Positions 1 through 64,000 of a DNA stretch of 64,000 nucleotides are shown here, one piece after another (positions within the stretch are counted from its first letter, which is position 1; each line of letters begins with the position of its first letter). The stretch covers positions 3,472,001-3,536,000 of the forward strand of contig OX337236.1 in the NCBI GenBank assembly GCA_946965045.2, read 5' to 3'. Made by a program: the position numbers and the translations under genes. The notes below the pieces were generated by a model. The model saw nothing but the letters and a program-made list of their open reading frames with translations, made no database searches and had not been told where the DNA came from. The DNA is from Epithemia pelagica (taxonomy: Eukaryota; Protista; Bacillariophyta).

Positions 1-427
1 TCATTCTAATATGGTGCTTTCCAATGCACGAAGTTCTTGTGCAGTGGTTACCGTGGGATCCTGTTTGGTAGTGGCCGGAGGACTAAGCAATTCAACCGTG
101 GACGTCTTGGATACGCACCGCAACCGTGTGTGGAATCTCCCACCATTCGGAAATCGCCGCGATCACTTCAGTATGGCGATTGTTGCCAATCATGTTGCCG
201 TGATAAGTGGTTTTGGCAGTTCTGCCTGTGCGACATTACCACTACTGGACAAGCATACGTGGTGTTTTCGACGACTCTTTGAGCATCAGATCGACAGATG
301 TTGTCTATTTCGGGAAGGAAGGAATATCCAACTTGCTGATAATTCACCCTTCTCCGCCTCGACATCAGCTCATAAACGAGCAAGGCCCGATACACGCCGT
401 GGTGATGAAGGAAAGGATGAAACTTGA
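1..427 (+). CDS. Kelch-repeat protein, copy 1 (3' part only; 5' end outside window)
   Basis: Blades 5-6 (GSCLVVAGG, NHVAVISG) and KRARP tail match the other array copies. Confidence 0.85.
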   Translation, partial: HSNMVLSNARSSCAVVTVGSCLVVAGGLSNSTVDVLDTHRNRVWNLPPFGNRRDHFSMAIVANHVAVISGFGSSACATLPLLDKHTWCFRRLFEHQIDRCCLFREGRNIQLADNSPFSASTSAHKRARPDTRRGDEGKDET

Positions 428-3108
428 AATTTGCAACGTATTGCATGTATGTCCTAACAATAGCGGAACTGTAGCATTATCATTTTACTCTCAAACAGTT
501 GGTGTACTGTATTCTTCATGGCATTGCGACCTCTTGAGATATCACATACACCTTTGTACTAGTAGAAAACGAAGGTTACACCATCCGGCATGACACCGCA
601 AACAGGAGTGGAACCAGGCCTCGGGTAGATGTCCATGGTACCATGCCTCTCTGAAGTTAACTAGGTCGACTTATCATGCTGTGGAAAATTATGGTTGCGT
701 GCCTGCAACACTTGGCGCAGCGACTCGTTTGGACGGTCGACCATGCGTTCAATTGTGGAGTCCGGGCTTTCTATGGCTAACGCCTACGTGAGAGGACAGT
801 ACCCCGTCTCTCGATGCTTGTGGTTTCGGGTGAGAGAACCCTTTGGAATTTTTGCCACCGAAGTGTTCGATATTTCCTCCACTACAGCAACTAGTCTTTG
901 TGAAGTCTTTATGATGAGGTCAGCAATTTGCTTGCGTCAATCCAGCAATCAGTCTCTCCGTAGTGGCTCGTTGACAGCCCATTGGTATCGGTCCATGGAT
1001 ATCAACAAGAACAATCGCAGTGCGCAAAGTTATGTCTCGCCCCTCAATGCCAGTTCCGCCGAAACCTTGTTGCACGATTGCAACACTGTCGAACAGCATT
1101 AGTGTTGGACATTGCCCACTACAACCTTTGTGCCTCGTACAGTACCAACAACAAAACCACGACCACGAATGGCGCCGATCATGTCTTGGCTGTAGTCTAC
1201 TAGAACTTGTTTTGTTGTTGTTCTTCTTCTTCGTTGGATTCTGGTTGGTGTTGCTGCCTTGTCGTTCCACATCAACACCCAGCTTGAATCTTCGTATGCA
1301 GGCTTGAAGGGGCGATGCCACCCTTTCCCATGATCAATTCTTCACTACTCCAATCGGACGCGTCGGGAGGGAGTTGAATAGCGTTCCATACTTCAATCCA
1401 TAGTACTGCGCTCCTCGTCACCGGCGCAACTACCTCCAATGGGGCGACTTTGTGATCGATTCAGCAGGTCCTCATGGTGTCATGTCGAGAAAGGGTCCTC
1501 AATAATTGGCGACCAGACTGCCATGCAGTGCCACAACACAAAACACAAAGGGATTTGCGTGGTCTTGTTGTTGATTCTCGTTCCACGAAAGACATGTGGA
1601 TGAGGAAGCATACCATCGCCCTAGTGCTATTCTTTTTGTTGTTCTGTTCTTTGCTGCACTTCGAAAGCCAAGGTACGATTTCTAGCTTGTTGCGATGAAA
1701 GTTGTCGTTGAGTATGTTCATCTTGCTAGAGTCTTCTTTAGAGTCTTTCTCCACGGGAGACATGAGAGCAAATCATAGCAGAAAACGCTGCCAGAAGGCG
1801 CGAAAAGGTCAATCTCCGAAACCAAAGACGGCGACGACGGCGACAGACACATTGTTGTGCTGATGGTATCTTTTTTCGTTCGTTTCAATGGATATTCCCC
1901 CAAACTGTGATGTGGAGTCCCCCTCCCCCAAAATCTGGAGTCTCTTCCAAATCTTGGTCGCGGAATGAGGACAGGAATGGCTCGCAGGCGCGCCGACCAA
2001 GACGAACCCTGTCACTCTATCTCACAGGCGCGCCGACCGAGACGAGCAGTTCCACTCTTTCCTCTATTCGAAAAAGGAGAGGACAATTGACAATTGCTCT
2101 CGTCGCCAAGACGACCACTCTACAATAGAACCTACTGCCATACTCCATGGGAAACCATGGAATCGTTCGTTACGAGCAATTTATGAGACTTTGCCAGTGA
2201 CGAGGCATGTACGTCTCTTCTTCCTTTTCTTGGTGAAAGACTACGAAGATTGTCGCAAGGAAAAATACCAACCATATAAAGGCGCTTTGAATGAAATGGA
2301 ACAAGGGAGAACAACATCGACCATTCCACAAAAGCGGTAGCACCGAGGATGCAGAAGCGTTGACGATGCGTCATTCCTCATCCACAAAACTCCCTCTGCA
2401 AGCTTGTCTGCCTCCCCAAGACCCCACATTGATGCTGGTGGTGTACAATCGTTGTTGGTGAGACTCTCTCGATCAACCAAGTGGTCCCTCCAGTTTGTCT
2501 TCTTCGCAACAAAATCCTAACGCTACATGAGCAACAAGAAAAGAAACCGAGCGATCCACCATGGACCAATGCAAACAGGGTGATATCGAGTACTCTTCTG
2601 ATTTACCGCATTCATCCTCAAAAAGATCAGCAATGATTGGTACATGGGATCTCGTGTTTCGTGTAAACAACATCACCATCCCATGGGTCCCTCTGTAAGA
2701 AGAGAAGTTGTGGTTATTGAAAGCAGAGGCTCGACAAGTAGGATTGCAAAGAGATCCTCTCGTCATGAGCGCCCACGAAGAACGAAAAACCTATGGATAT
2801 GAGAAAGAACTGGATAGGAGCCATACATATCAGTGGTCGTCTGTCTCGCCATGAGGTTTCTTTCGGTATCCAAAAACTTTTATGGAACTCGAAACAAGAA
2901 TGCGTGATCATCTTCATTGCGTGGCTACGGTCACGATTTGTCTCGTGACGAAAGCTCCTACCCCTCTTTGGTCCATCCATTTCGTCAAGTCAGTAGTGCT
3001 TCCAGTCCGCACCCATCAGAATCACAGGAGCAGAGCAAACCCTCTAACCACTAACACAATACAGTGTCGCGGTCCTCATAAATTTGCTGCTATTAATATT
3101 TTGGAGCA

Positions 3109-4344
3109 ATGAGCACGACACTGAAAGAACAAGCATGGCAGTCGGGCCTTTTCTTATCGAAAGAGACAGCACAATGGAATGAAAATGATTGGCCTCCTCT
3201 CGAGGGTGGATGGCGCGACGAACATGCTACAGTCGTACTAGATCATCCCGATACGGACAACGACAACGACAACAACAACAAGAGACAAACCGTCGTCGTG
3301 TTGGGTGGATATCAAGCAGGTCAGGGCAGTCTCGATTCCATTCTTGTATTGAACGTGGCAGCGCCGGACAAGAACTGGCAAGAAGGGCCATCAATGAACA
3401 AGAGTCGTCGAGGACATGCCGCTGTTGGGTGCAACGGAGGCGTCTATGTGATAGGAGGAAACAATGGAAGATCACATTTAGATTGTATCGAACGAATTGA
3501 CATAAAGAATTTGCTGCATTCACCTTTAACAACAAGCAACAAACGTGAGAGGCATTGGACGAGATTGACATGTTGCTTATCAACGAGACGATCGGGATGT
3601 TGTGCTGTTGCGGTTCACAACCGATACATTGTTGTAATGGGTGGATGGGATGGAAGGCAAAGGTTGTCGTCAGTGGATATTATTGATACCAGGAACCACA
3701 CCGTCACTGTGGGACCAAGCATGACTGTTCCACGACGATTTTGTACCAGCGCGGTTATTGGTCACCGCATCTTTGTCGTTGGAAGCCATGGTGAGCATGG
3801 CAATGTTGACTCGGTGGAGTACTTGGACTATGCAACACCCTGGGACAATCATGAGACAAAGGAGCAGACTGGCTCGACATTCATTTCTTTCTCACCCACC
3901 TGGACCACTCAGTCGGAGTTGAGGCTTTCCAATGCACGAAGTTGTTATGCAATGGTTGCCGTGGGATCTTGTCTAGTGGTGACTGGAGGATACGAATCAT
4001 CCGTGGAGGTCTTGGATACGCATCACAACTGCATGTGGAATCTCCCACCATTCGGAAATCACCGTGTTGGCTGCAATATGGTGACTGTTTCCAATCAAGT
4101 TGCCGTGATTGGTGGATGGGGCAATCCTTCCTGTGCGACATTACCACTACTGGATAGGAATTCGTGGTGTTTTCGTCGACTCTGTGAGCAGCAGCCCAAT
4201 CGATGGTATCATTCTCTTGAAAGTTTGGGTATCCGAGATGATGATATCTCACCCTTCTCCACATCGACATTAGCTTGTAAACGCGCAAGGTCCGATACTC
4301 ACCGTGGTGATGATGGGACGGATGAAAACCTAGACGTTTTGTAA
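3109..4344 (+). CDS. Kelch-repeat beta-propeller protein, copy 2 (411 aa)
   Basis: Six Kelch blades (VVLGG...W.EGP.M..R, VYVIGG, IVVMGG, IFVVG, LVVTGG, VAVIGG); leader MSTTLKEQAWQSG; intronless ORF. Confidence 0.93.
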   Translation: MSTTLKEQAWQSGLFLSKETAQWNENDWPPLEGGWRDEHATVVLDHPDTDNDNDNNNKRQTVVVLGGYQAGQGSLDSILVLNVAAPDKNWQEGPSMNKSRRGHAAVGCNGGVYVIGGNNGRSHLDCIERIDIKNLLHSPLTTSNKRERHWTRLTCCLSTRRSGCCAVAVHNRYIVVMGGWDGRQRLSSVDIIDTRNHTVTVGPSMTVPRRFCTSAVIGHRIFVVGSHGEHGNVDSVEYLDYATPWDNHETKEQTGSTFISFSPTWTTQSELRLSNARSCYAMVAVGSCLVVTGGYESSVEVLDTHHNCMWNLPPFGNHRVGCNMVTVSNQVAVIGGWGNPSCATLPLLDRNSWCFRRLCEQQPNRWYHSLESLGIRDDDISPFSTSTLACKRARSDTHRGDDGTDENLDVL

Positions 4345-5564: not shown

Positions 5565-5801
5565 TGTGAGTAGTGGAAAAGAAGGGCGGTCTCTTTCCCA
5601 TTGAGCAATCCGTAAAAGGATACTTATTCTGATAATCACTATTATGTTAGTCCTAAATTCTCACTAAATTCACTTGGATCTTTTCTTCAATATCTTTTGG
5701 ATGAGTCATTCCATCCACTCGTTCACATCTACGTCGCTCATCATTCGTGATTGATGAGTCTTGTTGCCAGGTATAAGCTTGCTACCCCAGCTATACTCGC
5801 A
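5565..5801 (-). repeat. 3' LTR of copia element
   Basis: Direct repeat of 12493-12729; preceded on the minus strand by the purine tract GAGAGGGAG. Confidence 0.97.
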
Positions 5802-5815
5802 CTCCCTCTCAAGCG
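5802..5815 (-). other. Polypurine tract of copia element
   Basis: Minus strand CGCTTGAGAGGGAG abuts the TG start of the 3' LTR. Confidence 0.8.
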
Positions 5816-5826
5816 CAATATCTTGG

Positions 5827-10632: not shown

Positions 10633-10647
10633 CCAGCGGCCACCCTA

Positions 10648-12390: not shown

Positions 12391-12478
12391 TGTTCTCACC
12401 TTCTCTCTGTCCTATCTTGCCAGAGCACTCACTTTCTTGACACCGTACGACCTTGGGAAACCTTCTACAGCGTAATAC

Positions 12479-12492
12479 TTGGGCTCAGAACC
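12479..12492 (-). other. Primer-binding site, half-tRNA type
   Basis: GGTTCTGAGCCCAA directly follows the 5' LTR; resembles the GGTTATG(A/G)GCCC anticodon-loop PBS of Ty5 and Drosophila copia; no TGG start. Confidence 0.65.
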
Positions 12493-12729
12493 TGTGAGTA
12501 GTGGAAAAGAAGGGCGGTCTCTTTCCCATTGAGCAATCCGTAAAAGGATACTTATTCTGATAATCACTATTATGTTAGTCCTAAATTCTCACTAAATTCA
12601 CTTGGATCTTTTCTTCAATATCTTTTGGATGAGTCATTCCATCCACTCGTTCACATCTACGTCGCTCATCATTCGTGATTGATGAGTCTTGTTGCCAGGT
12701 ATAAGCTTGCTACCCCAGCTATACTCGCA
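12493..12729 (-). repeat. 5' LTR of copia element
   Basis: Direct repeat of 5565-5801. Confidence 0.97.
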
Positions 12730-12750
12730 CTCGTCGTCGACCAAAAGATA

Positions 12751-13549: not shown

Positions 13550-14650
13550 ATGACAACGACGCTGCAAAAGCAAGCATGGCAGTCGGGCCTTGTCCTGTTA
13601 GACGAGACACCTGAGTGGAATTTCGAGGACTGGCCTTCTCTTGAGGGAGAAGGGCGTTATCGTCATGCTTCGGTCGTACTGAATCATCCCGATAACAACC
13701 AAGAACAAACCGTCGTCGTGTCGGGTGGATGGCAACAAGGCCAAGGCGAGCTCGATTCCATTCTTGTAATGAATTTGGAGGACCAGAACAAGCAGTGGCG
13801 CGAAGGACCACCCATGAACAAGAGTCGTCGAGGACATGCCGCTGTTGTGTGCAATGGCGCTGTCTTTGTAATGGGAGGATTGAATCAAGGTTCATGTTTG
13901 AATTGTATCGAAAGAATTGACGTAAAGAATTTGCTGCGATCATCTTCGACAATCAGCACCACACATACGATTAATTGGACGACATTGACATGTCGATTAT
14001 CGACGAGAAGAAATGGATGTTGTGCTGTTGCGGTGCATGATCGATACATTGTTGTAATGGGTGGCTGTTACAACCATCGCTGTTTTTCGTTGGTGGATAT
14101 TATTGATACCAGCAATCACATTGTCACTGCTGGACCATCCATGACTGTTCCACGAGCATCCTGTGCCAGTGCGGTCATTGGCCACCGCATCTTTGTTGTT
14201 GGAGGCGAAAACGATCTTAACTCGGTGGAGTATTTGGAATTTTCAAAGCCTGGTGACAATGAAGAGACAAAGAAGCAGACTGGCTTGACATTGAGTTCTT
14301 TCTCGTCCCCTTGGATTACTCACCCTGATTTGGTCCTTTCCAATGCACGAAGTCCTTGTGCAGTGGCTGCCGTGGGATCTTGTCTGGTGGTGGCGGGAGG
14401 ATGGGGTTCAACCGTGGAAGTCTTGGATATTCACCGCAACCGCGTATGGAACCTCCCACCACCATTCGGAAATGACCGCACTGGCTACAATATGGTGACT
14501 GTTGCCAATCAAGTTGCCGTGATTGGTAGATGGGAAAATCCTTCCTGTGCGACATTACCACTTATCGACAAGAATACATGGTGCTTTCGTCGACTCTGTG
14601 AGCACCAATCGAACGAATGGTATCATTCTCTTGAAGGTATGGGTATCTGA
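13550..14650 (+). CDS. Kelch-repeat protein, copy 3 (C-tail truncated by CGA>TGA)
   Basis: Six blades; stop at GI* where paralogs read GIRD. Confidence 0.88.
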   Translation: MTTTLQKQAWQSGLVLLDETPEWNFEDWPSLEGEGRYRHASVVLNHPDNNQEQTVVVSGGWQQGQGELDSILVMNLEDQNKQWREGPPMNKSRRGHAAVVCNGAVFVMGGLNQGSCLNCIERIDVKNLLRSSSTISTTHTINWTTLTCRLSTRRNGCCAVAVHDRYIVVMGGCYNHRCFSLVDIIDTSNHIVTAGPSMTVPRASCASAVIGHRIFVVGGENDLNSVEYLEFSKPGDNEETKKQTGLTLSSFSSPWITHPDLVLSNARSPCAVAAVGSCLVVAGGWGSTVEVLDIHRNRVWNLPPPFGNDRTGYNMVTVANQVAVIGRWENPSCATLPLIDKNTWCFRRLCEHQSNEWYHSLEGMGI

Positions 14651-15379
14651 GATGCTGATATCTCACCCTTCTCCACATCGACATAAGCTCGTAAACGACC
14701 AAGGACCAATACATGCCAAAAAGATAGAGGGCATGATGAAACCTAGCCATTTATTTCTCGATTGGTTGACTTGTTTTCTACATTCGATTGCAATCCTAGA
14801 ACCTAGTAAGTAGTAACTCAAAGGTAGACAGAACATGTTGCAAGATAGAATGTGATTGTTTGTTGTCACTGCAGGTTTTGGGACAGTGCTTCCACCGTGA
14901 CTGTGCAGTTGTGAGACCAGAATCGGGCACTTTGTGGTGGCATCATGGCTCTCTTTATAACACAGAGTCGTCGTCCATGGATTGGTAGCTGTGGCAGGGA
15001 GGCCACCAACCGATGAGAGGAGCAAGAACAGAAGCACACCAAGGCGAAACCTTGTTGGACCTGATGTTGTCCGCTTTGAAGTGTTCTTCCTCGAAAGATG
15101 AAATGGGTCAAGTTTGGATGGAAGTAGGAGGGAGGACCGTGTCATATCCAATTCCGACATTTTGGCCAAGAACAGTTTTTCCCTTTCGGAGGAGTCACCG
15201 CTCCAATCGCAATGCCTTCTTCTAGCTGCTGTTGCATGTGAATCACAATACGTTGCTGCACTTTGCCATGTGATGTCAAGCCGGAATGGCCCAAACAAAT
15301 CCACAAGTGCGGCTGTCCAACCACCAACCACGGAGGAGACGGCCGATAATGACGATGTCTCCTCGTCGTTGGAAGCGGC

Positions 15380-17607: not shown

Positions 17608-18771
17608 ATGACAACCACACTGAAAGAACAAGCATGGTAGTCGGGACTTGTCTTATCGGACGACACAGCAGAATGGAATGAAAACGATTGGCCTCCTCTC
17701 GAGGGTGGATGGCGTTGGTTTCATACATCGGTCGTACTAAATCATCCCGCTAAGACCAACTATAACAACGACAAGGCACAAACAGTCGTGGTGATGGGAG
17801 GATGCGACAAAGGCTGGAATACTACCAATTCCGTTCTTGCATTGAATCTAGCAGAACCGAACAAACAGTGGCGAGAAGGAACACCCTTGAACCAGAAACG
17901 TTCTGGACATGCTGCTGTTGTGTCCAACGGAGGCGTCTACGTGATGGGAGGATACTTTGAACATGTATGTTTAAATTGTATCGAACGAATTGACGTAAAG
18001 GATTTGATGCAATCACCTTTACCAGCAAGCAACAAATATGAGAGGCATTGGACGACATTGAACTGTCGACTATCATCTGGACGACATGGATGTTGTGCTC
18101 TCTCGGTGCACAACCGATATATTGTTGTGATGGGTGGCTATTGCAACCATCGTTATTGGTCGTCGGTGGATATTGTTGATACCAAGAATCACATTGTCAC
18201 TGCTGGACCATCCATGACTGTTCCTCGATCTTTTTGTTCCAGTGCGGTCGTTGGCCACCGCATCTTTGTCGTTGGGGGTCATAACGATGAGCATGTCAAT
18301 CTTGCCTCGGTGGAGTACGTGGACTTTGCAGAGCCCTGTGACAGTGATCAGATAAAAGAGGAGACTGGTTCAACATTCATTCCCCTCTCGTCCGCTTGGA
18401 TCACTCATTCTGATTTGGTGCTTTCCAACCCTAGAGATTCTTGTGCAATGGTTCCCGTGGGATCTTGTCTGGTGGTGGCCGGAGGATGGCGCATTTCAAC
18501 CGTGGAAGTCTTGGATACGCGCCGCAACCGTGTGTGGAATCTCCCACCATTGACTAATAACTGCCGCAGTGGTTGCAGTATGTTGACTGCTGCCAATCAA
18601 GTTGCCGTGATCGGTGGTTTGTACAATCCTACCTGTGCGACATTGCCACTAATGGATAGGAATTCGTGGTGTTTTCGCCGTCTCTGTGAGCAGCAACTTA
18701 GCGGATGGTACCATTTACGGGAAGGAATGGGCATTTCGTCCTTCTCCACCTCGACATCAAAATCTGAATGA
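17608..18771 (+). pseudogene. Kelch copy 4 with a nonsense codon at codon 11 (CAG>TAG, 17638-17640)
   Basis: MTTTLKEQAW* then the same frame stays open through all six blades to 18771. Confidence 0.85.
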
Positions 18772-25962: not shown

Positions 25963-27183
25963 ATGAGCATGACACTGAAAGAACAAGCATGGCAGTCGGG
26001 CCTTTTCTTATCGAAAGAGACATCACAATGGAATGAAAACAATTGGCCTTCTCTCGAGGGTGGATGGCGTTACGAACATGCTACGGTCGTACTTGATCAC
26101 CCCGATGAAGACGACAATAACAAGAACAACAACATGCGACAAACGGTCGTCGTCTTGGGAGGATGGCAACAATACAAAGGCTATGTCAATTCCGTTCTGC
26201 AATTGAATCTATCAGACCCAAACATGCAGTGGCGAGAAGGGCCACCCATGAACAAGAGACGTAATAGACATGCCGCTGTTGTGTGCAACGGGGGTGTCTA
26301 CGTAATGGGAGGATGCAATCAAGGTTCGATGGATTTTATCGAACGAATTGACGTAAAGAATTTGCTCCGATCATCTTTGACAACAACCAGGACGCAGGAG
26401 AGCCCTTGGAAAACATTGACATGTCGCTTATCAACAAGACGATCAGGATTTTGTGCTGTCGCGGTCCTCAATCGATACATTGTTGTAATGGGTGGCTACA
26501 ACGGTCAATATTTGTCATCGGTGGATATTATTGATACCAACAATCACATTGTCACTGCTGGACCATCCATGAACGTTGCACGATCATTTTTTGCCAGTGC
26601 GGTTATTGGTCACCGCATTTTTGTCGTTGGAGGCTATAACGAGAGTGGCTATCTTGACTCGGTGGAGTATTTGGAGGACGCAACACCCTGTGACAGTGAT
26701 GAGACAAAAAAGGAAACTGGCTCGACATTCATATCTTCGTCGTCTGCTTGGATCACTCATTCTGAGTTGGTGGCTTCCAATGCACGAAGGTTTTGTGCAA
26801 TGGTTGCCGTGGGATCTTGTCTGGTAATGGCGGGAGGAGAATACGATCCTACCGTGAAAGTCTTGGATACGCACCACAACCGAGTGTGGAATCTCCCACC
26901 ATTGGATTATCACTGCTTAGACTGCAGTCTAGTGACTGTTGCCAATCAAATTGCCGTGATTGGTGGACTCCGCAATCCTTCCTGTGCAACATTACCACTT
27001 CTGGATAGAAATTCATGGTGTTTTCGTCGACTCTGTGAGCAGCAACCGAACGGATGGCATCATTCTCTTGAAGGTGTGGGTATCCGAGATGCTGATATCT
27101 CACCCTTCTTGACATTGGCATCAGCACGTAAACGCGCAAGGTCCAATTCTCAAAGTGGTGATGAAGGGAAGGATGAAGCCTAG
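25963..27183 (+). CDS. Kelch-repeat protein, copy 5 (406 aa)
   Basis: Six blades, conserved leader, RKRAR tail. Confidence 0.93.
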   Translation: MSMTLKEQAWQSGLFLSKETSQWNENNWPSLEGGWRYEHATVVLDHPDEDDNNKNNNMRQTVVVLGGWQQYKGYVNSVLQLNLSDPNMQWREGPPMNKRRNRHAAVVCNGGVYVMGGCNQGSMDFIERIDVKNLLRSSLTTTRTQESPWKTLTCRLSTRRSGFCAVAVLNRYIVVMGGYNGQYLSSVDIIDTNNHIVTAGPSMNVARSFFASAVIGHRIFVVGGYNESGYLDSVEYLEDATPCDSDETKKETGSTFISSSSAWITHSELVASNARRFCAMVAVGSCLVMAGGEYDPTVKVLDTHHNRVWNLPPLDYHCLDCSLVTVANQIAVIGGLRNPSCATLPLLDRNSWCFRRLCEQQPNGWHHSLEGVGIRDADISPFLTLASARKRARSNSQSGDEGKDEA

Positions 27184-32491: not shown

Positions 32492-32493
<2 letters not shown>

Positions 32494-38645: not shown

Positions 38646-39815
38646 ATGGCCACCACACTGAAAGAACAAGCATGGCAGTCGGGCCTTGTCCTGTATGACG
38701 AGACACCTGAATGGAATTTCGAGGACTGGCCTCCTCTCGAGGGTGGATGGCGTTATCGTCATGCTACGGTTGTACTAGATCATCCCGATACGGACGGCAA
38801 CGACGACAACCCGAAGAGACAAACGGTCGTCGTGATGGGAGGACGTCAACAAGGCGAATATGTCACCAATTCCGTTCTTGTATTGAACTTGGCAAACCCA
38901 AACAAACAGTGGCGAGAAGGGCCACCTATGAACAAGAGTCGTCGAGGACATGCCGCTGTTGTGTGCAACAGAGCCGTCTACGTGATGGGAGGATATGCTG
39001 ACAATTCAATGTTCGATTGCATGGAACGCATTGATGCCAATGATTTGCTGCAATCATCTTCGACATCAAGCAGTTCAAAGAAGAGCCATTGGACGACATT
39101 GAATTGTCGATTATCAACGGGTCGATGTGGATGTTGTGCTGTTGCGGTTCACAACCGATACATCGTTGTAATTGGTGGTTATGACGGTAGTCGAACGTTG
39201 CCGTCGGTGGATATTATTGATACCAGGCACCACACTGTCACTCCGGGGCCAAGCATGACTGTTCCACGACGATTTTGTACCAGCGCGGTTATTGGTCACC
39301 GCATCTTTGTCGTTGGAAGCCATGGTGAGCATGGCAATGTTGACTCGGTGGAGTACTTGGACTATGCAACACCCTGGGACAATCATGAGACAAAGGAGCA
39401 AACTGGCTCGACATTCATTTCTTTCTCACCCACCTGGACCACTCAGTCGGAGTTGAGGCTTTCCAATGCACGAAGTTGTTATGCAATGGTTGCCGTGGGA
39501 TCTTGTCTAGTGGTGACTGGAGGATACGAATCATCCGTGGAGGTCTTGGATACGCATCACAACTGCATGTGGAATCTCCCACCATTCGGAAATGACCGCA
39601 TTGGCTGCAGTATGGTGACTGTTGCCAATCAAGTTGCCGTGATTGGTGGATGGATAAATCCTTCATGTGCAACATTACCACTAATGGATAGGAATTCGTG
39701 GTGTTTTCGTCGACTCTTTAAGCAGCCTCGGAACGAATGGTATTACTATCTAGAAATATCGGGTAACGGAGATGTCAATGTAACATCCAGGACCATCTCG
39801 ACATCCACTCTATAA
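38646..39815 (+). CDS. Kelch-repeat protein, copy 8 (divergent tail, no KRAR)
   Basis: MATTLKEQAWQSG; six blades. Confidence 0.92.
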   Translation: MATTLKEQAWQSGLVLYDETPEWNFEDWPPLEGGWRYRHATVVLDHPDTDGNDDNPKRQTVVVMGGRQQGEYVTNSVLVLNLANPNKQWREGPPMNKSRRGHAAVVCNRAVYVMGGYADNSMFDCMERIDANDLLQSSSTSSSSKKSHWTTLNCRLSTGRCGCCAVAVHNRYIVVIGGYDGSRTLPSVDIIDTRHHTVTPGPSMTVPRRFCTSAVIGHRIFVVGSHGEHGNVDSVEYLDYATPWDNHETKEQTGSTFISFSPTWTTQSELRLSNARSCYAMVAVGSCLVVTGGYESSVEVLDTHHNCMWNLPPFGNDRIGCSMVTVANQVAVIGGWINPSCATLPLMDRNSWCFRRLFKQPRNEWYYYLEISGNGDVNVTSRTISTSTL

Positions 39816-42162: not shown

Positions 42163-43419
42163 ATGACAACGTTACTGAAAGAACAAGCATGGCAGTCGGG
42201 CCTTGTCTTATCGGACGAGACACCAGAGTGGAATCAAAATGACTGGCCTCCACTTGTGGGTGGATGGCGTGCAGGTCATACTTCGGTCGTACTTGATCAC
42301 CCCGATACGGACGGCAACGACAACAACAACAACAACAAGAGACAAACCGTCGTCGTGTTGGGCGGATTTCAAGCAGGTCAGGGCAGTCTCGATTCCATTC
42401 TTGTATTGAACGTGGCAGCGCCGGACAAGCACTGGCGAGAAGGGCCATCAATGAACAAGAGTCGTCGAGGACATGCCGCTGTTGGGTGCAACGGAGGCGT
42501 CTATGTGATGGGAGGCTACAATGGAAGCTCAGTATTTGATGAACCAGAATCTTTCAATTGTATCGAACGAATCGATGCCGATGAAATCCTACAATCATCT
42601 TCGACATCAAGCATCACACATGCAAGCAATTGGACGACATTGAATTGTCGATTATCAACGGGTCGATGTGGATGTTGTGCTGTTGCGGTTCACAACCGAT
42701 ACATCGCTGTAATGGGTGGCTACAACGATCGTTATTTGCCGTCGGTGGATATTATTGATACAAACAACCACATAGTCACTGCGGGACCATCCATGACTGT
42801 TCCACGAGCATGGTGTGCCAGTGCGGTCATTGGTCACCGCATCTTTGTCGTTGGAGGTTGTAATGATAAGGGCAATCTTGACTCGTTGGAGTATTTGGAC
42901 TATGCAACACCCTGTGACAATGATGCGACAAAGAAGGAGATAGGTTCGACGTTCATTTCTTTCTCTTCCACCTGGACCACTCATTCGGAGTTGAGGCTTT
43001 CCAATACACGAAGTGCTTGTGCAATGGTTGCCGTGGGATCTTGTCTGGTTGTGGCCGGAGGAAACCGTGATACCGTGGAAGTCTTGGATACGTACCGCAA
43101 CTACGTGTGGAATCTCCCACCATTGAGTAATTCCCGCAGGTGCTGCAGTATGGTGACTGTTGCCAATCAAGTTGCCGTGATTGGTGGAGGGCGAAATTCT
43201 ACCTGTGCGACATTGCCACTAATTATCTGTGCGACATTGCCACTAATGGACAAGAATACGTGGTGTTTTCGCCGACTTTGTGAGCAGCACCTTAACAGAT
43301 GGTATCATTTTCGGGAAGGAATCGGTATCGGAGATGATCATATTTCCCCCTTCTCCTCAGCTCATAAACGAGCAAGGCCCAATACGCACCGTGGTGATGA
43401 AGGGAAGGATGGAACTTGA
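42163..43419 (+). CDS. Kelch-repeat protein, copy 9 (start set at ATG 42163)
   Basis: Six blades; loop insertion SSVFDEPES; 8-aa duplication CATLPLII; HKRARP tail. Confidence 0.92.
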   Translation: MTTLLKEQAWQSGLVLSDETPEWNQNDWPPLVGGWRAGHTSVVLDHPDTDGNDNNNNNKRQTVVVLGGFQAGQGSLDSILVLNVAAPDKHWREGPSMNKSRRGHAAVGCNGGVYVMGGYNGSSVFDEPESFNCIERIDADEILQSSSTSSITHASNWTTLNCRLSTGRCGCCAVAVHNRYIAVMGGYNDRYLPSVDIIDTNNHIVTAGPSMTVPRAWCASAVIGHRIFVVGGCNDKGNLDSLEYLDYATPCDNDATKKEIGSTFISFSSTWTTHSELRLSNTRSACAMVAVGSCLVVAGGNRDTVEVLDTYRNYVWNLPPLSNSRRCCSMVTVANQVAVIGGGRNSTCATLPLIICATLPLMDKNTWCFRRLCEQHLNRWYHFREGIGIGDDHISPFSSAHKRARPNTHRGDEGKDGT

Positions 43420-46139: not shown

Positions 46140-47330
46140 ATGAGCATGACACTGAAAGAACAAGCATGGCAGTCGGGCCTTGTCATATCGGACGAAACAC
46201 CAGAGTGGAATGAAAACGACTGGTCTCCTCTTGTGGGTGGATGGCGTTACCGTCATACTTCGGTCATATTGAATCATACCGATAACAACAAGAGACAAAC
46301 GGTCGTCGTGATGGGCGGATATCAGCAAGGCAAAGGTACCACGGATTTCGTTCTTGTAATGAATCTATCAGACCCAGACAAACAGTGGCGCGAAGGACCA
46401 TCCATGAACCAGAAGCGTGATGGACATGCCGCTGTTGTTTGCAATGGCGGCGTGTACGTGATGGGAGGATACAATCGAGTAACTTTGGATTGTATTGAAC
46501 GAATCGATGCCAATGATTTGCTACAATCATCCTTAACAACAACCACCACGCATGAGAGTCATTGGACGACATTGACATGTCGATTATCGACGAGAAGAAA
46601 TGGATGTTGTGCTGTTGCGGTGCATGATCGATACATTGTTGTAATGGGTGGCTGTTACAACCATCGCTGTTTTTCGTCGGTGGATATTATTGATACCAGC
46701 AATCACATTGCCACTGCTGGACCATCCATGACTGTTCCACGAGCATCCTGTGCCAGTGCGGTCATTGGCCACCGCATCTTTGTCGTTGGAGGCGAAAACG
46801 ATCTTAACTCGGTGGAGTATTTGGAATTTTCAAAGCCTGGTGACAATGAAGAGACAAAGAAGCAGCCTGGCTTGACATTGAGTTCTTTCTTTTCCACCTG
46901 GATCACTCATTCTGATTTAGTGCTTTCCAATGCACGAAGTTGTTATGCAATGGTTGCCGTGGGATCTTGTCTAGTGGTGACTGGAGGATACGAATCATCC
47001 GTGGAGGTCTTGGATACGAACCGCAACTGCGTGTGGAATCTTCCACCATTCGCATATCACCGCGATGGCTGCAGTATGGTGACTGTTGCCAATCAAGTTG
47101 CCGTGATTGGTGGTTTGTACAATCCTACCTGTGCGACATTACCACTAATGGATAGGAATTCGTGGTGTTTTCGTCAACTCTGTGAGCAGCAATCGAACGG
47201 ATGGTATCATTCTCTTGAAGGTATGGGTCTCCGAGATGATGATATCTCACCCTCCTCCACGTCGACATCAGCTCGTAAACGAGCAAGGCAGAATACGCGC
47301 CAAAATAAGAAAGGGTCTGATGAAACATAA
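46140..47330 (+). CDS. Kelch-repeat protein, copy 10 (396 aa)
   Basis: Six blades; RKRAR tail. Confidence 0.93.
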   Translation: MSMTLKEQAWQSGLVISDETPEWNENDWSPLVGGWRYRHTSVILNHTDNNKRQTVVVMGGYQQGKGTTDFVLVMNLSDPDKQWREGPSMNQKRDGHAAVVCNGGVYVMGGYNRVTLDCIERIDANDLLQSSLTTTTTHESHWTTLTCRLSTRRNGCCAVAVHDRYIVVMGGCYNHRCFSSVDIIDTSNHIATAGPSMTVPRASCASAVIGHRIFVVGGENDLNSVEYLEFSKPGDNEETKKQPGLTLSSFFSTWITHSDLVLSNARSCYAMVAVGSCLVVTGGYESSVEVLDTNRNCVWNLPPFAYHRDGCSMVTVANQVAVIGGLYNPTCATLPLMDRNSWCFRQLCEQQSNGWYHSLEGMGLRDDDISPSSTSTSARKRARQNTRQNKKGSDET

Positions 47331-48724: not shown

Positions 48725-49918
48725 ATGACCACCACGCTGAAAGAACAAGCATGGCAGTCGGGGCTTGTCCTTATGGACGAGATAGCGCAATGGAATGAAA
48801 ACGATTGGCCTTCTCTTGAGGGTGGATGGCGAGATTATCATACATCGGTCGTACTTGATCATCCGGGGAAGACGGTCGTCGTGTTGGGAGGATATCAACA
48901 AGGCCAAGGCGGTGTCAATTCCGTTCTGTTATTGAATCTGTCAGACCCAGACAGGCACTGGCGAGAAGGGCCGCCCATGAACAAGAGATGTTATGGACAT
49001 GCCGCTGTTGTGTGCAACGGAGTCGCCTACGTAATGGGAGGATACAATGGAAATGGAGAAGCTTTGGATTGTATTGAACGAATCGATGCCAATGATTTGC
49101 TTCGATCATCCTTTACAACCACCACCACACAGCATAGTTATTGGACAACATTGACATGTCGATTATCAACGGGACGAGTGGGATGTTGTGCTGTTGCCGT
49201 GCACAACCGATACATCGTTGTAATGGGTGGCTACAGCAATCGTTATTGGTCGTCGGTGGATATTGTTGATACCAGGAACCACACTGTCTCTGTGGGACCA
49301 TCCATGAATGTTCCTCGATTTTGTTGTGCCAGTGCGGTCATTGGACACCGCATCTTTGTCGTTGGAGGTCATAACGATAATGGCCATCTTGACTCGGTGG
49401 AGTATTTGGACCATGCAACACCCCTTGACAGTGATGAGACAAAAAAGGAGACTGGCTCGACATTCCTTTCTTTCTCGTCCACCTGGATCACTCATCCTGA
49501 TTTGGTGCTTTCCAACCCTAGAGATTCTTGTGCAATGGTTGCCGTGGGATCTTGTCTGGTGGTGGCGGGTGGACAAGGCCATTCAACCGTGGAAGTCTTG
49601 GATACGCGCCGCAACCGCGTTTGGAATCTCCCACCATTGGATAATCACCGCGACGACTGCAGTACGGTGACTGTTGCCAATCAAGTTGCCGTGATAAGTG
49701 GCTGGGGAAGTCGTACCTGTGCGACATTACCACTACTGGACAAGCATACGTGGTGTTTTCGACGACTCTATGAGCAGCAGATCGACAGATGGTGTCTATT
49801 TCGGGAAGGAAGGAATATCCAACATGCTGATAATTCGCCTTTCCCCACCTGGACATCAGATCGTAAACGAGCAAGGCCCCACACGCACCGTGGTGATATA
49901 TGGAAGGATGGAACTTGA
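48725..49918 (+). CDS. Kelch-repeat protein, copy 11 (start set at ATG 48725)
   Basis: Six blades; shortest blade-1 loop (HPGK); RKRARP tail. Confidence 0.92.
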   Translation: MTTTLKEQAWQSGLVLMDEIAQWNENDWPSLEGGWRDYHTSVVLDHPGKTVVVLGGYQQGQGGVNSVLLLNLSDPDRHWREGPPMNKRCYGHAAVVCNGVAYVMGGYNGNGEALDCIERIDANDLLRSSFTTTTTQHSYWTTLTCRLSTGRVGCCAVAVHNRYIVVMGGYSNRYWSSVDIVDTRNHTVSVGPSMNVPRFCCASAVIGHRIFVVGGHNDNGHLDSVEYLDHATPLDSDETKKETGSTFLSFSSTWITHPDLVLSNPRDSCAMVAVGSCLVVAGGQGHSTVEVLDTRRNRVWNLPPLDNHRDDCSTVTVANQVAVISGWGSRTCATLPLLDKHTWCFRRLYEQQIDRWCLFREGRNIQHADNSPFPTWTSDRKRARPHTHRGDIWKDGT

Positions 49919-49919
49919 A

Positions 49920-53599: not shown

Positions 53600-53750
53600 C
53601 ACCGGTCCTGACACCCACCATTGGCGAACGGAGGCCCTTGAGCCCGTGCGATATGCGTCTGCCACAATCATTGGACGACATGCGCGAGCATTACTGACAA
53701 CCGGCGAAGACGGCACGACACGGATTTGGCTCTCCCATAAAGATGATGAT
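53600..53750 (+). pseudogene. WD40-like fragment (paralog ~41400-41525)
   Basis: ALLTTGEDGTTRIW and ALLTTGADGTRRIW resemble the WD40 core lvTgseDgtvrlW. Confidence 0.4.
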
Positions 53751-54381: not shown

Positions 54382-55416
54382 ATGACAACGACACTGCAAA
54401 AGCAAGCATGGCTGTCGGGCCTTGTCCTGTTAGACGATGAGACACCTGAATGGAATTTCGAGGACTGGCCTCCTCTTGAGCGTGGATGGCGCTGGCATCA
54501 TGCTACGGTCATAATTGATCATCCCGATAACAACAAGGAACAAACGGTCGTCGTGTTGGGAGGTTACAGACAAGCCCCAGGTGCCACGGGTTCCGTTCTT
54601 GTATTGAATCTATCGGACCCAGACAAGCAGTGGCGAGAAGGACCATCCATGGACAAGACACGTGGTGGACATGCCGCTGCTTTGTGCAATGGCGGCGTTT
54701 ACGTAATGGGCGGATTCAATCGAGTTTGGGTGGATTCTATTGAACGAATCGATGCCAATGATTTGCTTCGATCATCTTTGACAACCACCACCACGCATGA
54801 GAGCAGTTGGACGGCATTGACATGTCGATTATCAACGGGCCGAGATGGATGTTGTGCTGTTGCGGTGCATGATCGATACATTGTTGTAATGGGTGGCTAC
54901 AGCGATCGTCATTTGTCGTCGGTGGATATTATAGATACAAACAACCACACTGTCACTGCGGGACCATCCATGAATGTTCCTCGATTTTGTTGTGCCAGTG
55001 CGGTCATTGGTCACCGCATCTTTGTCGTTGGAGGTCATAACGATGAGCATGGCTGTCTTTACACGGTGGAGTATTTGGACTATGCAACACCCTGTGACAA
55101 TGATGAGACAAAAAAGGAGACTGGCTCGACATTCCTTTCTTTCTCGTCCACCTGGATCACTCATTCGGAGTTGAGGCTTTCCAATTCACGAGGTTCTTGT
55201 GCAATGGTTGCCGTGGGATCTTGTCTAGTGGTGGCGGGAGGAGGATGGGGCAATTCAACCGTGGAAGTGTTGGATACGAACCGCAACCGCGTTTGGAATC
55301 TCCCATCACTCGGAAATGACCGCTTTGACTGCACTATGGTGGCTGTTGCCAATCAAGTTGCCGTGATTGGTGGATGGGAGAATCCTTCCTGTTCAACATT
55401 ACCACTCCTGGATTGA
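54382..55416 (+). CDS. Kelch-repeat protein, copy 12 (tail removed by AGA/AGG>TGA; propeller complete)
   Basis: Six blades; stop at LLD* where paralogs read LLDRNSW; the tail DNA persists downstream. Confidence 0.85.
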   Translation: MTTTLQKQAWLSGLVLLDDETPEWNFEDWPPLERGWRWHHATVIIDHPDNNKEQTVVVLGGYRQAPGATGSVLVLNLSDPDKQWREGPSMDKTRGGHAAALCNGGVYVMGGFNRVWVDSIERIDANDLLRSSLTTTTTHESSWTALTCRLSTGRDGCCAVAVHDRYIVVMGGYSDRHLSSVDIIDTNNHTVTAGPSMNVPRFCCASAVIGHRIFVVGGHNDEHGCLYTVEYLDYATPCDNDETKKETGSTFLSFSSTWITHSELRLSNSRGSCAMVAVGSCLVVAGGGWGNSTVEVLDTNRNRVWNLPSLGNDRFDCTMVAVANQVAVIGGWENPSCSTLPLLD

Positions 55417-58400
55417 AATTCGTGGTGTTTTCGCCGTCTCTGTGAGCAGCAATCGAACGGATGGTATCATTCTCTTGAAGGTGTGGGTATCCGAGATGCT
55501 GATATCTCACACTTCTTCACATCGACATGAGCTCGTAAACGCGCAAGGTCCAATACTCAAAGTGGTGATGAAGGGACGGATGAAGCCTAGACGTTTATTT
55601 CTCGAGTGGTTGACTTCTTTTCTACATTCGATTGCAATCCTAGAACCTAGTAAGTGGTTACTCAAAAGTAGAAAGAACATGTTGCAAGATAGAAGGTGCT
55701 TGCTTGTTGTCAAAGACGTGGAAGGAACGACCAAATTTTGTGTCTCTACAAGTGGTAGTGCGACCACTGTGGTTGTGAGACCGTAAGACAAGAATCTAGG
55801 GCTTTGTGGTGGCATCTTGACACTTTGTAGGACACAGAGACATTGTCCATGGATCGGTAGCTAATGGTAGGGACACTCACACTCCAGGAAGGGAGAGTTG
55901 CGCATCGATGTCGTAGTCAAGGGCAATCCGGTTTGTTCACGCCATTTTGTGTTCATTACGATGGAATAGTGCAGAGTAGTTTTCCTGTTGGTGACAGGGC
56001 AAATCCATATATGTTTCATGACATGGTGGTTGCCGTGACTGTCAAGGGTGTTCCATCTTGTCGTTTCTTGGCATGGGATGCTGTTGCTACGACACAATTT
56101 TGCCGTGGACCACGACCATTGCCGGATCATTTGTTACCATCTAAACAATACTTGAACAGCGCCGAGGGAGACTCTCCGTAGTAATCGGTTGCGGTATTGG
56201 TGGACTTCTTGTCTGGATTGAGTAAAGAAGTATGTGTAGTCCTTGCGTTCCTTGTTGCATCGGCATCGTACTCGTCTGTATATGCACCTGGATGATGTTC
56301 TTGCTGTTCTGCTTCTGATTAGGTGCTGGTGTAAACAACGACTCCATGGTGTGGTTGTGGTATTATATAGTAGAGGAATCCGCATTGGCCTTGCATGATT
56401 CCTCGCTTCGTTCGTTGGATTGTGATAAGTCTGGAAAACCCCAAACTTGCAACACTCTGGTTCTTGTGGTGGTAGCTGGAGTTTGTGCTTGTGGTGGTCA
56501 TTGTCGCTGTTGACTTGTGTTGTTGATGAGATGGGTCGTGGTTGGTTCCTCCTTCTTGGAGCCACAAATCACTCGACGAATTTGAAGTATTGGTGATCAT
56601 GATGCTACTGTGTCATTTGTTTCGGTTGGTAGTTCTGTGGTGCTTTTCGTTTCCCCTTGTTCCAAAAAATGAACAGGTCGTGATAGTCGTCAGTTGGTCC
56701 GCCTGTTGGCAATGCATCGATGGAAACCATTCATTCGTTGCTATTGGCAATTACGCGAAGGAGGACAAAACCTGGATGCCTGCTGCGCATGCGACAATTG
56801 TTGTTGTTGCTGTTGTTTGGGTCCTGTTGGTAGATCGGGAATCCTGATTTTTCTCTTCTTGTCGTGCTCTTCAACGAACGTGCAGGGCGGTAGTTCTTGT
56901 TGATGTTTGGGTGTAACTGGTTGTAGTTGTTTTTGTGTTGTCGGCATCATCGTAGTACAATAGAATGACTGTGTTGTTGAACATTTGCTCCTTTCCGCCA
57001 CGATTTATGATTTTCGACATCTGTTGGTCGTGCTCCTTGTGTGGCTTGGTTCATGGTCTCGTGGTCGATGAATCCGACAAAGGACAAAACGGGTGGATCG
57101 AAAGGTCCGATCATGAGAGGAGCAGTAAAAGGACGAAAAGCACGACAAGCCAAAACCTTGTGGACCCCATAGTCCGCTTCTCTGATGCTTCTTTTTGGAA
57201 ATCGAGCATGGTTGGTTGCTGATTCTATACATTCCTCTTCGTCTTGTGAAGAAGGAATCATCGTTGATCGAGCAAAGATGGAATGGAACCGTCCTTGACA
57301 ATCAAGGGGAAGGAAGCTCCACATGAGACTAGGGCGGAGTCGTGATTGCCATTGTGGTGATTTCGAGCAAGACACATGGCTCCAGAAATGGTTGTTGCTT
57401 TTGGAAAATTGGGCAAAGACTGGTGGTAGTTGGTGCTGTTGATGTTGCTGCAGACTCACACCGCTTGTGTTTTTTTGTCGTTTCTGGCGTCGTCAGTCGG
57501 TTGGTGACGTCGTCCTTCTCGTTGTCTAGTAAAAAAGGTTTTCTTACTTGACGTCCCGACTGAAATGCGGTAGCACAATCCTCATGCTGGGCGTTGTGCC
57601 ACGACGATACCGCTCTTCTGTTTGTTGTTGCATCAAGGATTTCTTATCGTCACAACCAAATGTTTTCCATGCACAATAAGATGTCATGTTTCGACTCGGG
57701 ACCTGGATGTTGTTCTTGGTGATGGAACCATGCATTGATACGGATTCCGAATCACAACGACAAGAAAATCAAAAAGAAGCGTGACACTGTGGTAATGTGA
57801 ATGGCCCCTGTGACTTGGACCAACTACTTGGTCAACAACCGTCTGGACGACACGACGGACCAAAACAACCACACGACAGAGAGATGAAAAGGAGGAGGAT
57901 TTTTCCTAGCCCATGTGGTGGTCCTTTTGTTTGTTTCCACTAGAATTGGGCATGATTGATGTTGGAGCCGGTGGGGACTGTTTGGACGTTGGGCCTGACA
58001 GTTTTTACCATGGATTTTGAGCGCATGGCACCCATGCAACTCATGGCATGCTTCACGCTCGTGTGTTGGAATTGGTGGCGTCCTTTTGCCATTTTGACTT
58101 TGCGCTGTCGTCCCCGCTCTCGCAATGGAAGTCACCTTGAATATACCCACACGTGTTTGAAGCCTTGACCATAGTGGGAAACCATTTCCCATTTGCATTG
58201 AGACGCAATGCCTCGTTCAGTCCGGGTCCCCAAAGTTGCATCCGATCCATGTCTTCTTGACACTCGAGGCTTTCATCAAGGCTAGAGAACTGCACCACTC
58301 CCAGAGCTCGAATTCGGTTTGAAGAAAATATTATGATGATCATGCGCCGCCTTGTCCATCTTTCTTGTTGTTGGATCTATGAATTCGAATCTTTTTGGCC

Positions 58401-59321: not shown

Positions 59322-60557
59322 ATGCCCACGACGTTGAAAGAACAAGCATGGCAGTTGGGCCTAGTCCTTTTGGACGAGACACCTGAATGGAATTTCGAGG
59401 ACTGGCCTCCTCTTGTGGGTGGATGGCGAGAGCGTCATGCTTCGGTCGTACTTGATCATCCCGATACGGAGAACGACAACAACAACAAGAAACAAACGGT
59501 CGTCGTGTTGGGAGGATATCAACAAGGCCAAGGCGATGTCAATTCCGTTCTGCTATTGAATCTATCAGACCCAGACAAGCAATGGCAAGAAGGACCACCT
59601 ATGAACAAGAGTCGTCGTGGACATGCCGCTGTTGTGTGTAATGGAGCCATCTACGTGATTAGAGGATACAATGGAAACTCACGTCTGGATTGCATAGAAT
59701 GCATTGATGAAAACGACATACTACAATCATCCTTAACAACCACCACCACCCATGAGCCTCAATGGACGACATTGAACTGTCGATTATCAACGAAACGAGG
59801 AGGATGCTGTGCTGTCGCAGTTCTCAATCGATTCATTGTTTTAATGGGAGGACGCAACGGTAGGCAACACTTGTCGTCGGTGGACATTATGGATACCAGC
59901 AACCACATTGTCACTGCAGGACCATCCATGAATGTCCCTCGACAATTTTGTGCCAGTGCGGTCATTGGTCACCGCATCTTTGTCGTTGGAGGTCATAACT
60001 ATAATGGCCATTTTGACTCAGTTGAGTACGTGGACTATGCAACACCCTGTGACAATGATGAGACAAAAAAGAAGACTGGTTCAACATTCATTTCCTTATC
60101 GTCCACCTGGACCACTCATTCTGATTTAGTGCTTTCCAATGCACGAAGTTCTTGTGCAATGGTTGCCGTGGGATCTTGTCTGGTTGTTGCAGGAGGATGG
60201 GGCAATTCAACCGTGGAAGTCTTGGATACGAACCGCAACCGCGTGTGGAATCTTCCACCATTCGGAAATCACCGTGCTGGATGCAATATGGTGACTGTTG
60301 CCAATCAAGTTGCCGTTATAAGTGGCTTTGGCAATCCTTCCTGTGCAACATTTGGAATAATCGACAAGAATACGTGGTGTTTTCGTCGTCTCTGTGAACA
60401 GCAATCGAACGGATGGTATCATTCTCTTGAAGGTACGGGTATCCATGATACTGATATGTCACCCTTTTCTTCCTCGACATCCGGGTGTCTTTTGGGTGAA
60501 GGAATGAATATCCAACATGCTGATATTTCGAGCAAGGCCGGAGACATGCCGTGGTGA
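59322..60557 (+). CDS. Kelch-repeat protein, copy 13 (chimeric tail)
   Basis: MPTTLKEQAWQLG; six blades. Confidence 0.9.
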   Translation: MPTTLKEQAWQLGLVLLDETPEWNFEDWPPLVGGWRERHASVVLDHPDTENDNNNKKQTVVVLGGYQQGQGDVNSVLLLNLSDPDKQWQEGPPMNKSRRGHAAVVCNGAIYVIRGYNGNSRLDCIECIDENDILQSSLTTTTTHEPQWTTLNCRLSTKRGGCCAVAVLNRFIVLMGGRNGRQHLSSVDIMDTSNHIVTAGPSMNVPRQFCASAVIGHRIFVVGGHNYNGHFDSVEYVDYATPCDNDETKKKTGSTFISLSSTWTTHSDLVLSNARSSCAMVAVGSCLVVAGGWGNSTVEVLDTNRNRVWNLPPFGNHRAGCNMVTVANQVAVISGFGNPSCATFGIIDKNTWCFRRLCEQQSNGWYHSLEGTGIHDTDMSPFSSSTSGCLLGEGMNIQHADISSKAGDMPW

Positions 60558-63385: not shown

Positions 63386-64000
63386 ATGACCACGACACTG
63401 AAAGAACAAGCACGACAGTCGGGCCTTGTCTTATCGGACGAGCCACCTGAATGGAATTTCGAGGACTGGCCTCCTCTTGAGGGTGGATGGCGTGTAGAGC
63501 ATAGTTCGGTCGTACTGAGTCATCCCGATAACAACCAAGAACAAACCGTCGTCGTGTTGGGTGGATATCGAACAGGTCAAGGCGAGCTAGATTCCATTCT
63601 TGTATTAAACTTGGCAGAATCGAACAAGCAGTGGCGAGAAGGGCCACGCATGAACCAGAAGCGTGATAGACATGCCGCTGTTGTGTGCAATGGAGGCATT
63701 TACGTGCTGGGAGGAGACAATGGAGGTTCAGATTTGAATTGCATGGAACGAATCGACGCCAATGATTTGCTTCGATCATCTTTGACAACCACCACCACGC
63801 ATGAGAGCAGTTGGACGGCATTGACATGTCGCTTATCAACGCATCGATTTGGATGTTGTGCTGTTGCGGTTCACAACCGATACATCGTTGTAATGGGTGG
63901 CCATAACAACGATGGTTATTTGTCGTCGGTGGATATTATAGATACAAACAACCACACTGTCACTGCGGGACCATCCATGACTGTTCCACGACAATTTTGT
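63386..64000 (+). CDS. Kelch-repeat protein, copy 14 (runs off window end)
   Basis: ATG ACC ACG ACA CTG AAA GAA CAA GCA CGA CAG at 63386; open through blades 1-3. Confidence 0.88.
   Translation, partial: MTTTLKEQARQSGLVLSDEPPEWNFEDWPPLEGGWRVEHSSVVLSHPDNNQEQTVVVLGGYRTGQGELDSILVLNLAESNKQWREGPRMNQKRDRHAAVVCNGGIYVLGGDNGGSDLNCMERIDANDLLRSSLTTTTTHESSWTALTCRLSTHRFGCCAVAVHNRYIVVMGGHNNDGYLSSVDIIDTNNHTVTAGPSMTVPRQFC

Follow-up and report, generated by a model that had tools for sequence, protein, structure and literature searches.

We find that the Kelch genes arrayed in tandem along a 64-kb stretch of the genome of the diatom Epithemia pelagica have recently exchanged sequence with one another, and that the differences between them are concentrated in loops of the predicted ligand-binding face. 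The stretch (64,000 nucleotides (nt), positions 3,472,001 to 3,536,000 of contig OX337236.1, GenBank assembly GCA_946965045.2; hereafter the window, to which coordinates refer unless another contig is named) was placed on contig ctg1276l (451 kb) of ENA assembly ERZ21939226. Using tblastn with one copy together with frame translation, we located 14 Kelch genes, c1 to c14, all on the plus strand and head to tail, the number already counted in an earlier annotation made from the letters alone (the sequence-only reading); c2 to c13 (n = 12) are complete, and c1 and c14 run past the window ends. Each unit is a single intronless open reading frame (ORF) of about 400 codons, and the complete copies are 76-87% identical in nucleotide sequence. 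We consider it probable that the array is a germline repertoire of diverse putative binding modules, which recombine by ordinary exchange and whose variety is kept by selection.

Exchange between the Kelch copies

Recombination between the Kelch copies is real and recent, and chance is excluded as its explanation. Tracts of 57-390 nt that are in register and 97-100% identical link non-adjacent copies. Specifically, c2 (3109..4344; intact, 411 residues, Pfam Kelch_1 E 8.7e-33) and c8 (38646..39815; intact, with a divergent tail) differ at 1 of 345 nt across 3715-4059 and 39249-39593, one position beyond the end at 39592 given previously. The intact gene c10 (46140..47330) is a mosaic of tracts like those of c3, c2/c8 and c4: it matches c3 at 322 of 327 nt (46561-46887 versus 13974-14300), then carries the blade-5 sequence of c2 and c8 over 97 exact nt (46922-47018 versus 3924-4020 and 39458-39554) and the blade-6 motif of c4 at 56 of 57 nt (47109-47165 versus 18613-18669), where the flanks are 83% identical. 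In addition, c6 and c12 share 120 exact nt in blade 4 (30198-30317 versus 54993-55112), c2 and c9 share 61 and 72 exact nt in blade 1, and c7 and c11 are 94-99% identical from residue 257, in strand D of blade 4, to the stop codon (34887..35377 versus about 49428-49918), all on the plus strand. Each of these sharings had been noticed in the sequence-only reading, and all of them hold.

Two of the checks proposed at that time, per-blade trees and a GENECONV-style test, both bear out the exchange. In the latter, runs of identical polymorphic sites were compared with those obtained when the 576 polymorphic sites were permuted, and in ten pairs of copies the runs were longer than the global 5% limit allows; a scan that tolerates mismatches likewise retained eight tracts (103-389 nt). 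The pairwise homoplasy index (PHI) lay at z = -21.6, below the permutation mean, and 0 of 1000 permutations reached the observed value. Trees built for single blades conflict strongly, with supports of 0.95-1.0: c2 pairs with c5 in the N-terminus (0.99), with c9 in blade 1 (0.99) and with c8 in blades 4-5 (1.0), while c3 groups with c10 in blades 3-4 (1.0) and c7 with c11 in blades 5-6 (0.91 and 1.0). The claim that every gene is a mosaic goes too far in one respect: c4 and c5 have no globally significant tract in comparisons within the window.

The direction of one exchange can be read from a counterpart contig, by which we mean a contig of the same assembly that carries a diverged version of the locus, as either a haplotig or a paralogous array. 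There are three of these, ctg1252l, ctg1084l and ctg1237l (L004, L005 and L006, respectively), and we mark their gene versions with a prime. Across the c2/c8 tract region, c2' on ctg1252l is 95.6% identical to c2 (96.4% over the rest of the gene), whereas c2 and c8 are 99.7% identical. It follows that the tract is native to the c2 lineage, the donor, and was copied into c8, the recipient, after the split from ctg1252l. The view that the copies are being actively reshuffled is thus sustained as regards recombination between copies that is both real and recent.

The same view placed the shuffling at the level of whole blades, and this part does not stand. Thirteen breakpoints were mapped, at c5 residues 46, 114, 148, 199, 201, 210, 252, 257, 259, 266, 270, 303 and 316; the modelled blade starts in c5 are residues 40, 104, 165, 211, 278 and 322, and most breakpoints fall inside blades, so we rejected shuffling in blade phase. 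Every tract keeps its register, and none was seen to join unlike blade positions. Moreover, near-identical tracts of up to 1.4 kb occur in the non-coding spacers and are as fresh as the gene tracts or fresher. Positions 633-980 match 50129-50471 with 306 nt exact, 1876-2700 are 98-100% identical to 51595-52419, and 44400-45763 are 97-100% identical to 61631-62998. The last pair lies inside a 2.7-kb spacer that is 94.1% identical between c9>c10 and c13>c14, whereas the flanking gene pairs are 78.6% and 80.4% identical; likewise, the spacer c1>c2 is 92.8% identical to that after c11, and the flanking genes are 85% and 80% identical. At a mean synonymous divergence (dS) of 0.36, the gene bodies trace back along a genealogy that is distinct from, and deeper than, that of the spacers. 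Since the spacer tracts are at least as long and as fresh, no coding-targeted or programmed mechanism is indicated, and the suggested likeness to the programmed conversion of variable lymphocyte receptors (VLR) and variant surface glycoproteins (VSG) is likewise not supported. Generic ectopic gene conversion or unequal crossover between tandem copies accounts for the exchange, and nothing points to a dedicated shuffling device.

Fold and location of the variation

The array genes match Kelch-type Pfam models only (Kelch_1, E 9e-24 to 9e-33). Neither BTB, BACK or F-box nor NACHT or any second domain gave a Pfam match in the array proteins, in agreement with the earlier statement that BTB and F-box are lacking, and with about 39 residues before blade 1 the proteins do not have the BTB-Kelch architecture. 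An AlphaFold2 model of the intact copy c5 (25963..27183, 406 residues), built on 73 family members, is a six-blade propeller (predicted template-modelling score, pTM, 0.72) in which an N-terminal strand at residues 24-28 closes blade 6. In a Foldseek search with this model, designed SAKe Kelch propellers headed the list, and the natural matches were the Kelch domains of NS1-BP, KLHL12, KLHL3, KLHL20 and KEAP1 and the stand-alone KLHDC8; E-values against the KLHL/KEAP1/KLHDC Kelch folds ranged from 1e-15 to 1e-18. Pfam, the six-blade model and Foldseek all place the proteins in the Kelch-repeat beta-propeller superfamily. About 30 conserved residues, rich in Cys and Trp, form a C-terminal segment after the propeller, which matches no Pfam family and is of low confidence in the c5 model; reading this segment by eye, we saw no elongin BC-box pattern. 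Because direct reading of the N-terminus reveals no hydrophobic stretch, the sequence points to proteins that would be cytosolic or nuclear.

To locate the variation, ratios of non-synonymous to synonymous divergence (dN/dS) were calculated as Nei-Gojobori counting estimates over 66 pairs of window copies, by structural class of the c5 model. They are 0.12 in AB loops, 0.33 in strands and 0.47 in CD loops, 0.82 in DA loops and 0.86 in BC loops, 0.24 in the N-terminal 23 residues and 0.39 in the C-terminal segment. It is the inter-blade DA loops and the variable BC loops of the upper face that form the substrate pocket of KLHL proteins (PMC3597819), and the focus on these two loop classes agrees with the earlier statement that Kelch propellers bind ligands through loops of the top face. 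Of 15 hypervariable columns, which we defined from 64 relatives outside the window to avoid circularity, 14 belong to BC or DA loops (Fisher p 1.5e-6). The hypervariable codons of the window copies have a dN of 1.17 and a local dS of 0.92, giving an omega of 1.27 (bootstrap 1.08-1.89), at a gene-wide dS of 0.36. Near-allelic differences are mostly non-synonymous as well (6:2 between c5 and c5', 20:7 between c6 and c6') and cluster in BC and DA loops. Significant recombination between paralogues is thus found together with a raised dN/dS that is confined, by counting estimates, to the predicted binding surface. Together, these observations fit a diversifying family of putative binding proteins with variation focused on the predicted ligand-binding face of the model.

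Layout, turnover and extent of the family

Besides the copies described above, the array comprises the 3' part of c1 (2..421; its 5' part lies on the same contig beyond the window start) and the 5' part of c14 (63386..64000), both recovered by tblastn and translation. By translation, c6 (29575..30780), c7 (34160..35377), c11 (48725..49918) and c13 (59322..60557, with a divergent tail) are intact, as is c9 (42163..43419). In c3 (13550..14749) the stops are confined to the C-terminal tail, after residue 367; c12 (54382..55590) has an in-frame stop directly past strand C of blade 6; and c4 (17608..18738) has a stop at codon 11 and is likely a pseudogene. All are on the plus strand. Alignment reveals an internal duplication of 8 residues in blade 6 of c9, in the region of strand C (24 nt, in frame, 43180-43230, CATLPLI-ICATLPLM); the counterpart protein on ctg1084l has 411 residues versus 419 and is thus 8 residues shorter, and it may be without the duplication.

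A conserved module of about 230 nt precedes each Kelch ATG and is of one of two classes: class I at c2, c4, c5, c7, c8, c10, c11, c13 and c14, and class II at c3, c6, c9 and c12. The ATG context is common to all copies, and conserved sequence classes are present downstream of the genes, too. The class I module ends in a pyrimidine-rich ...CTGCAG that lies 15-17 nt 5' of the ATG and resembles a splice acceptor, and this end may mark an intron in the 5' untranslated region. An upstream coding exon, which could hide a BTB or F-box, was rejected: the distance from the CAG-like acceptor to the ATG varies by copy between 15 and 17 nt and keeps no frame, and the DNA upstream of the ATG is therefore taken as non-coding. 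We also rejected a higher-order repeat of three genes, since the upstream modules alternate I-II-I, yet the spacer homologies lack that period. Ten ORFs in the spacers matched no Pfam family.

Three other elements lie on the minus strand among the Kelch genes. One is a full-length Copia-type retrotransposon (5565-12732, ORFs 5827-12399; gag with a zinc knuckle, an integrase region and RVT_2), whose long terminal repeats of 240 nt are 100% identical and which has an apparent 5-bp target duplication, CTCGT. It is missing from ctg1252l exactly at the element border, and its insertion is therefore recent. The second, a hAT-like element (20698-24371) with an ORF (20903-24079) for a 1058-residue protein with weak DUF659 and hAT dimerisation matches, has imperfect terminal inverted repeats (CAAGGTTGCTACT / CAAGGATGCTACT) and a target duplication, TCCGATG, and is likewise absent from ctg1252l. 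The third is a gene of the leucine-rich repeat (LRR) type LRR_6 (36333-37562, 409 residues), which stands head to head with c8. After c3, at 15977-16763, lies a relic of the 3' end of this gene, truncated and up to 98.7% identical. The relic form sits at other positions on the counterpart contigs, and these differing positions mark unequal crossovers.

The counterpart contigs differ from the window in gene content. Contig ctg1252l matches it in patches of 93-100% identity, carries two quite different Kelch genes in place of c3 and c4, and jumps from the c5 spacer to sequence resembling that after c7. On ctg1084l, c9' and the c8>c9 spacer are near-identical to those of the window, and the position of c8 is taken by another gene, the first 394 nt of which are 99% identical to c6 of the window. 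Contig ctg1237l has c6' (94-100%) followed by unrelated Kelch bodies. An ORF resembling a long interspersed nuclear element (LINE), of 1796-1993 residues and with a faint Exo_endo_phos match, was observed after c5' (L004, 14695-20676) and before c6' (L006, 565-5955, there with a weak RVT_1 match); the window is without it at those positions, and ctg1252l and ctg1237l may be one haplotype broken at this element. Many family clusters are pairs whose members lie on separate contigs of about equal size, suggesting that the assembly includes both haplotypes.

At 90% identity, a word-indexed search gave 508 clusters, of which the best 120 were all 60-99% identical to c5 and lay on many large contigs. 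An exhaustive search of 50% representatives gave 155 clusters at E < 1e-30. All 20 clusters inspected were ENA-only, with no relative from a named source among them, and the two relatives that we traced to a contig (56% and 44% identical) were both in the same assembly, one of them in tandem with another copy and the other a singleton amid ordinary genes. The family is very large, with hundreds of members, and probably lineage-restricted, the window being one segment of it. Weak hints at a diatom source are that biofilm metagenomes contain 5-9% of the sampled sequence words and that the best match to the reverse transcriptase of the Copia element has a cluster rich in Bacillariophyta beside it. 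Also among the 50% representatives were five giant proteins (2000-7600 residues; one on an ENA contig of 12 kb), with 7-27 separate stretches of Kelch type that share 30-35% identity with c5. The literature searched yielded no account of expanded Kelch families in diatoms.

As to expression, one public run (kind unspecified, 40 Mb contigs) has a depth of 0-12 over the spacer at 40.0-41.8 kb, 195-380 on near-unique unitigs inside c8 and c9 at the same locus, and about 220-250 just downstream of c9 (about 500 nt). This coverage is RNA-like and hints at transcription of the Kelch genes; none of the four public runs of the organism was identified as RNA.

Competing explanations and known systems

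The explanation that we consider most probable builds on what the sequences show. Stand-alone six-blade Kelch propellers, each with a conserved N-terminal peptide and a conserved Cys/Trp-rich C-terminal segment, are encoded head to tail and swap sequence by homology-driven ectopic gene conversion and unequal crossover, spacers included. The exchanged stretches, of about 60-400 nt or half to two and a half blades, pass between paralogues in register; strands, AB loops and termini are held by purifying selection, and the differences between copies gather in the BC and DA loops. In the proposed explanation, after block duplication, gene bodies would be overwritten from hundreds of diverged paralogues, whereas the spacers have few homologues; because gene donors are many and spacer donors few, conversion would re-assort the loop sets of the genes and homogenise the spacers. 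Selection would tolerate or favour the resulting variety and retain it, yielding a germline repertoire of cytosolic or nuclear putative binding modules with many specificities, and the conserved termini may dock these modules to a common partner. Candidate roles are defence, recognition of non-self or of mates, and targeting for degradation.

Several points weigh against this explanation. Stops interrupt 3 of the 12 complete copies, and part of the array may therefore be decaying. The mean dN/dS of the loops is below 1, and the omega excess comes from 14 saturated codons and a counting method. Conversion also homogenises, and a net diversifying effect is what we infer. The case for expression is RNA-like coverage in a single run of unspecified kind.

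Some of these points are shared by a neutral account of birth-and-death and concerted evolution, which we place on the unlikely side. Under it, the family expanded for reasons other than recognition, such as dosage or drift within a genome full of repeats; the loops vary for lack of constraint and nothing else, and tandem homology gives rise to the mosaics as a side effect. That conversion is not specific to coding sequence, that mean loop dN/dS is 0.82-0.86 and not above 1, that a quarter of the complete copies carry stops and that transposons insert into the array all speak for it. However, dN at the independently chosen hypervariable sites is 1.17, about threefold the gene-wide dS of 0.36 and above the local dS as well (bootstrap lower bound for the ratio, 1.08). 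That strands, AB loops and termini are under strong purifying selection also tells against it and indicates that the Kelch proteins are in use. Moreover, the gene bodies are less alike than the neutral spacers, a pattern that would seem to require more than neutral concerted evolution.

We think it very unlikely that the Kelch genes belong to, or are carried by, a mobile or retro-copied unit, the mosaics having arisen by recombination between element copies. The intronless ORFs, the two classes of upstream module of about 230 nt with their conserved downstream classes, and the copies on many contigs, including the singleton among ordinary genes, would suit such a unit; the uniform head-to-tail order and spacers unlike in length and content would not, and the Kelch units come without terminal repeats, target-site duplications, poly-A tails or a transposase. 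The insertions of Copia and hAT are distinct from these units and can be dated, and the counterpart contig has neither. It is scarcely credible that misassembly of similar repeats produced the near-identical tracts as chimeras: public DNA runs yield unitigs of 100-300 nt only, with no tract bridged, and all compared contigs come from a single assembly, but the units differ by 13-24% and are easily separated, the tracts preserve both register and reading frame, their sequences recur at 95.6-99% on separately assembled contigs (c2' on ctg1252l, c9' on ctg1084l and c6' on ctg1237l), and tracts are found in spacers too, with borders that are graded and not abrupt.

A bolder version of the germline repertoire, which we regard as quite unlikely, is that several hundred stand-alone Kelch propellers form a receptor repertoire fuelled by recombination for intracellular recognition of non-self (viral or bacterial effectors, allorecognition or mating), with the termini coupling all variants to one effector. 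If true, this would be an immune-like system on a Kelch scaffold, unrelated to the nucleotide-binding leucine-rich repeat (NLR), LRR or immunoglobulin (Ig) systems. Little is known of how microalgae, including diatoms, recognise viruses, bacteria and conspecifics, and the family offers a concrete and testable candidate repertoire: its variation lies on the predicted binding face, its diverse genes stand beside homogenised non-coding DNA, and its gene content differs between counterpart contigs. Among the systems described in the literature searched, we found none with such a repertoire on a Kelch scaffold. Whatever the function, the locus is a clean natural example of conversion that diversifies where donors are many and homogenises where they are few.

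In fold, the nearest systems are KLHL/KEAP1 and KLHDC8/KLHDC2, which have the same six-blade Kelch fold. The KLHL/KEAP1 and KLHDC families are small and conserved, whereas the array family is hypervariable and massively expanded, without a match to BTB, BACK or F-box. CUL2 receptors of the KLHDC2 type carry a C-terminal elongin BC-box and Cul2-box after the propeller, and reading the array proteins by eye revealed no BC-box pattern; F-box-Kelch proteins have an N-terminal F-box, for which the array proteins gave no Pfam match. In plant NLR (R-gene) clusters, too, tandem paralogues often exchange sequence and so form chimeric genes, solvent-exposed residues are hypervariable, and haplotypes differ in gene content; their scaffold is LRR with NB-ARC and their immune function is proven, and both the scaffold and the proven function are theirs and not those of the Kelch array.

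Lamprey VLR, trypanosome VSG and the pseudo-V genes of chicken Ig resemble the array in that segmental copying between cassettes makes new combinations and that pseudogenes join in (here c3 and c12). In those systems, however, conversion is somatic or clonal, from silent donors into one expression site, whereas each Kelch copy has its own upstream module and ATG, exchange is germline-evolutionary, and non-coding DNA is affected. The structure of the genes, as read from the sequence, argues against a programmed or somatic conversion repertoire, and the joints seen in unitigs of the public runs can be explained by paralogues.

The nearest analogue in how the array would work is the HNWD family of Podospora anserina (het-d / het-e), WD40 genes whose paralogues exchange sequence at the scale of repeats and in which diversifying selection acts on a few residues of the interaction face (PMC1805685, PMC2873952). 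In both cases, the variable module is a beta-propeller and sequence passes between paralogues (PMC1805685). HNWD genes are NACHT-WD40 (NLR-like), number about ten, and exchange repeats out of register with changes in repeat number, whereas the array family consists of stand-alone Kelch propellers with six fixed blades, exchange in register only, no matched signalling domain and hundreds of genes.

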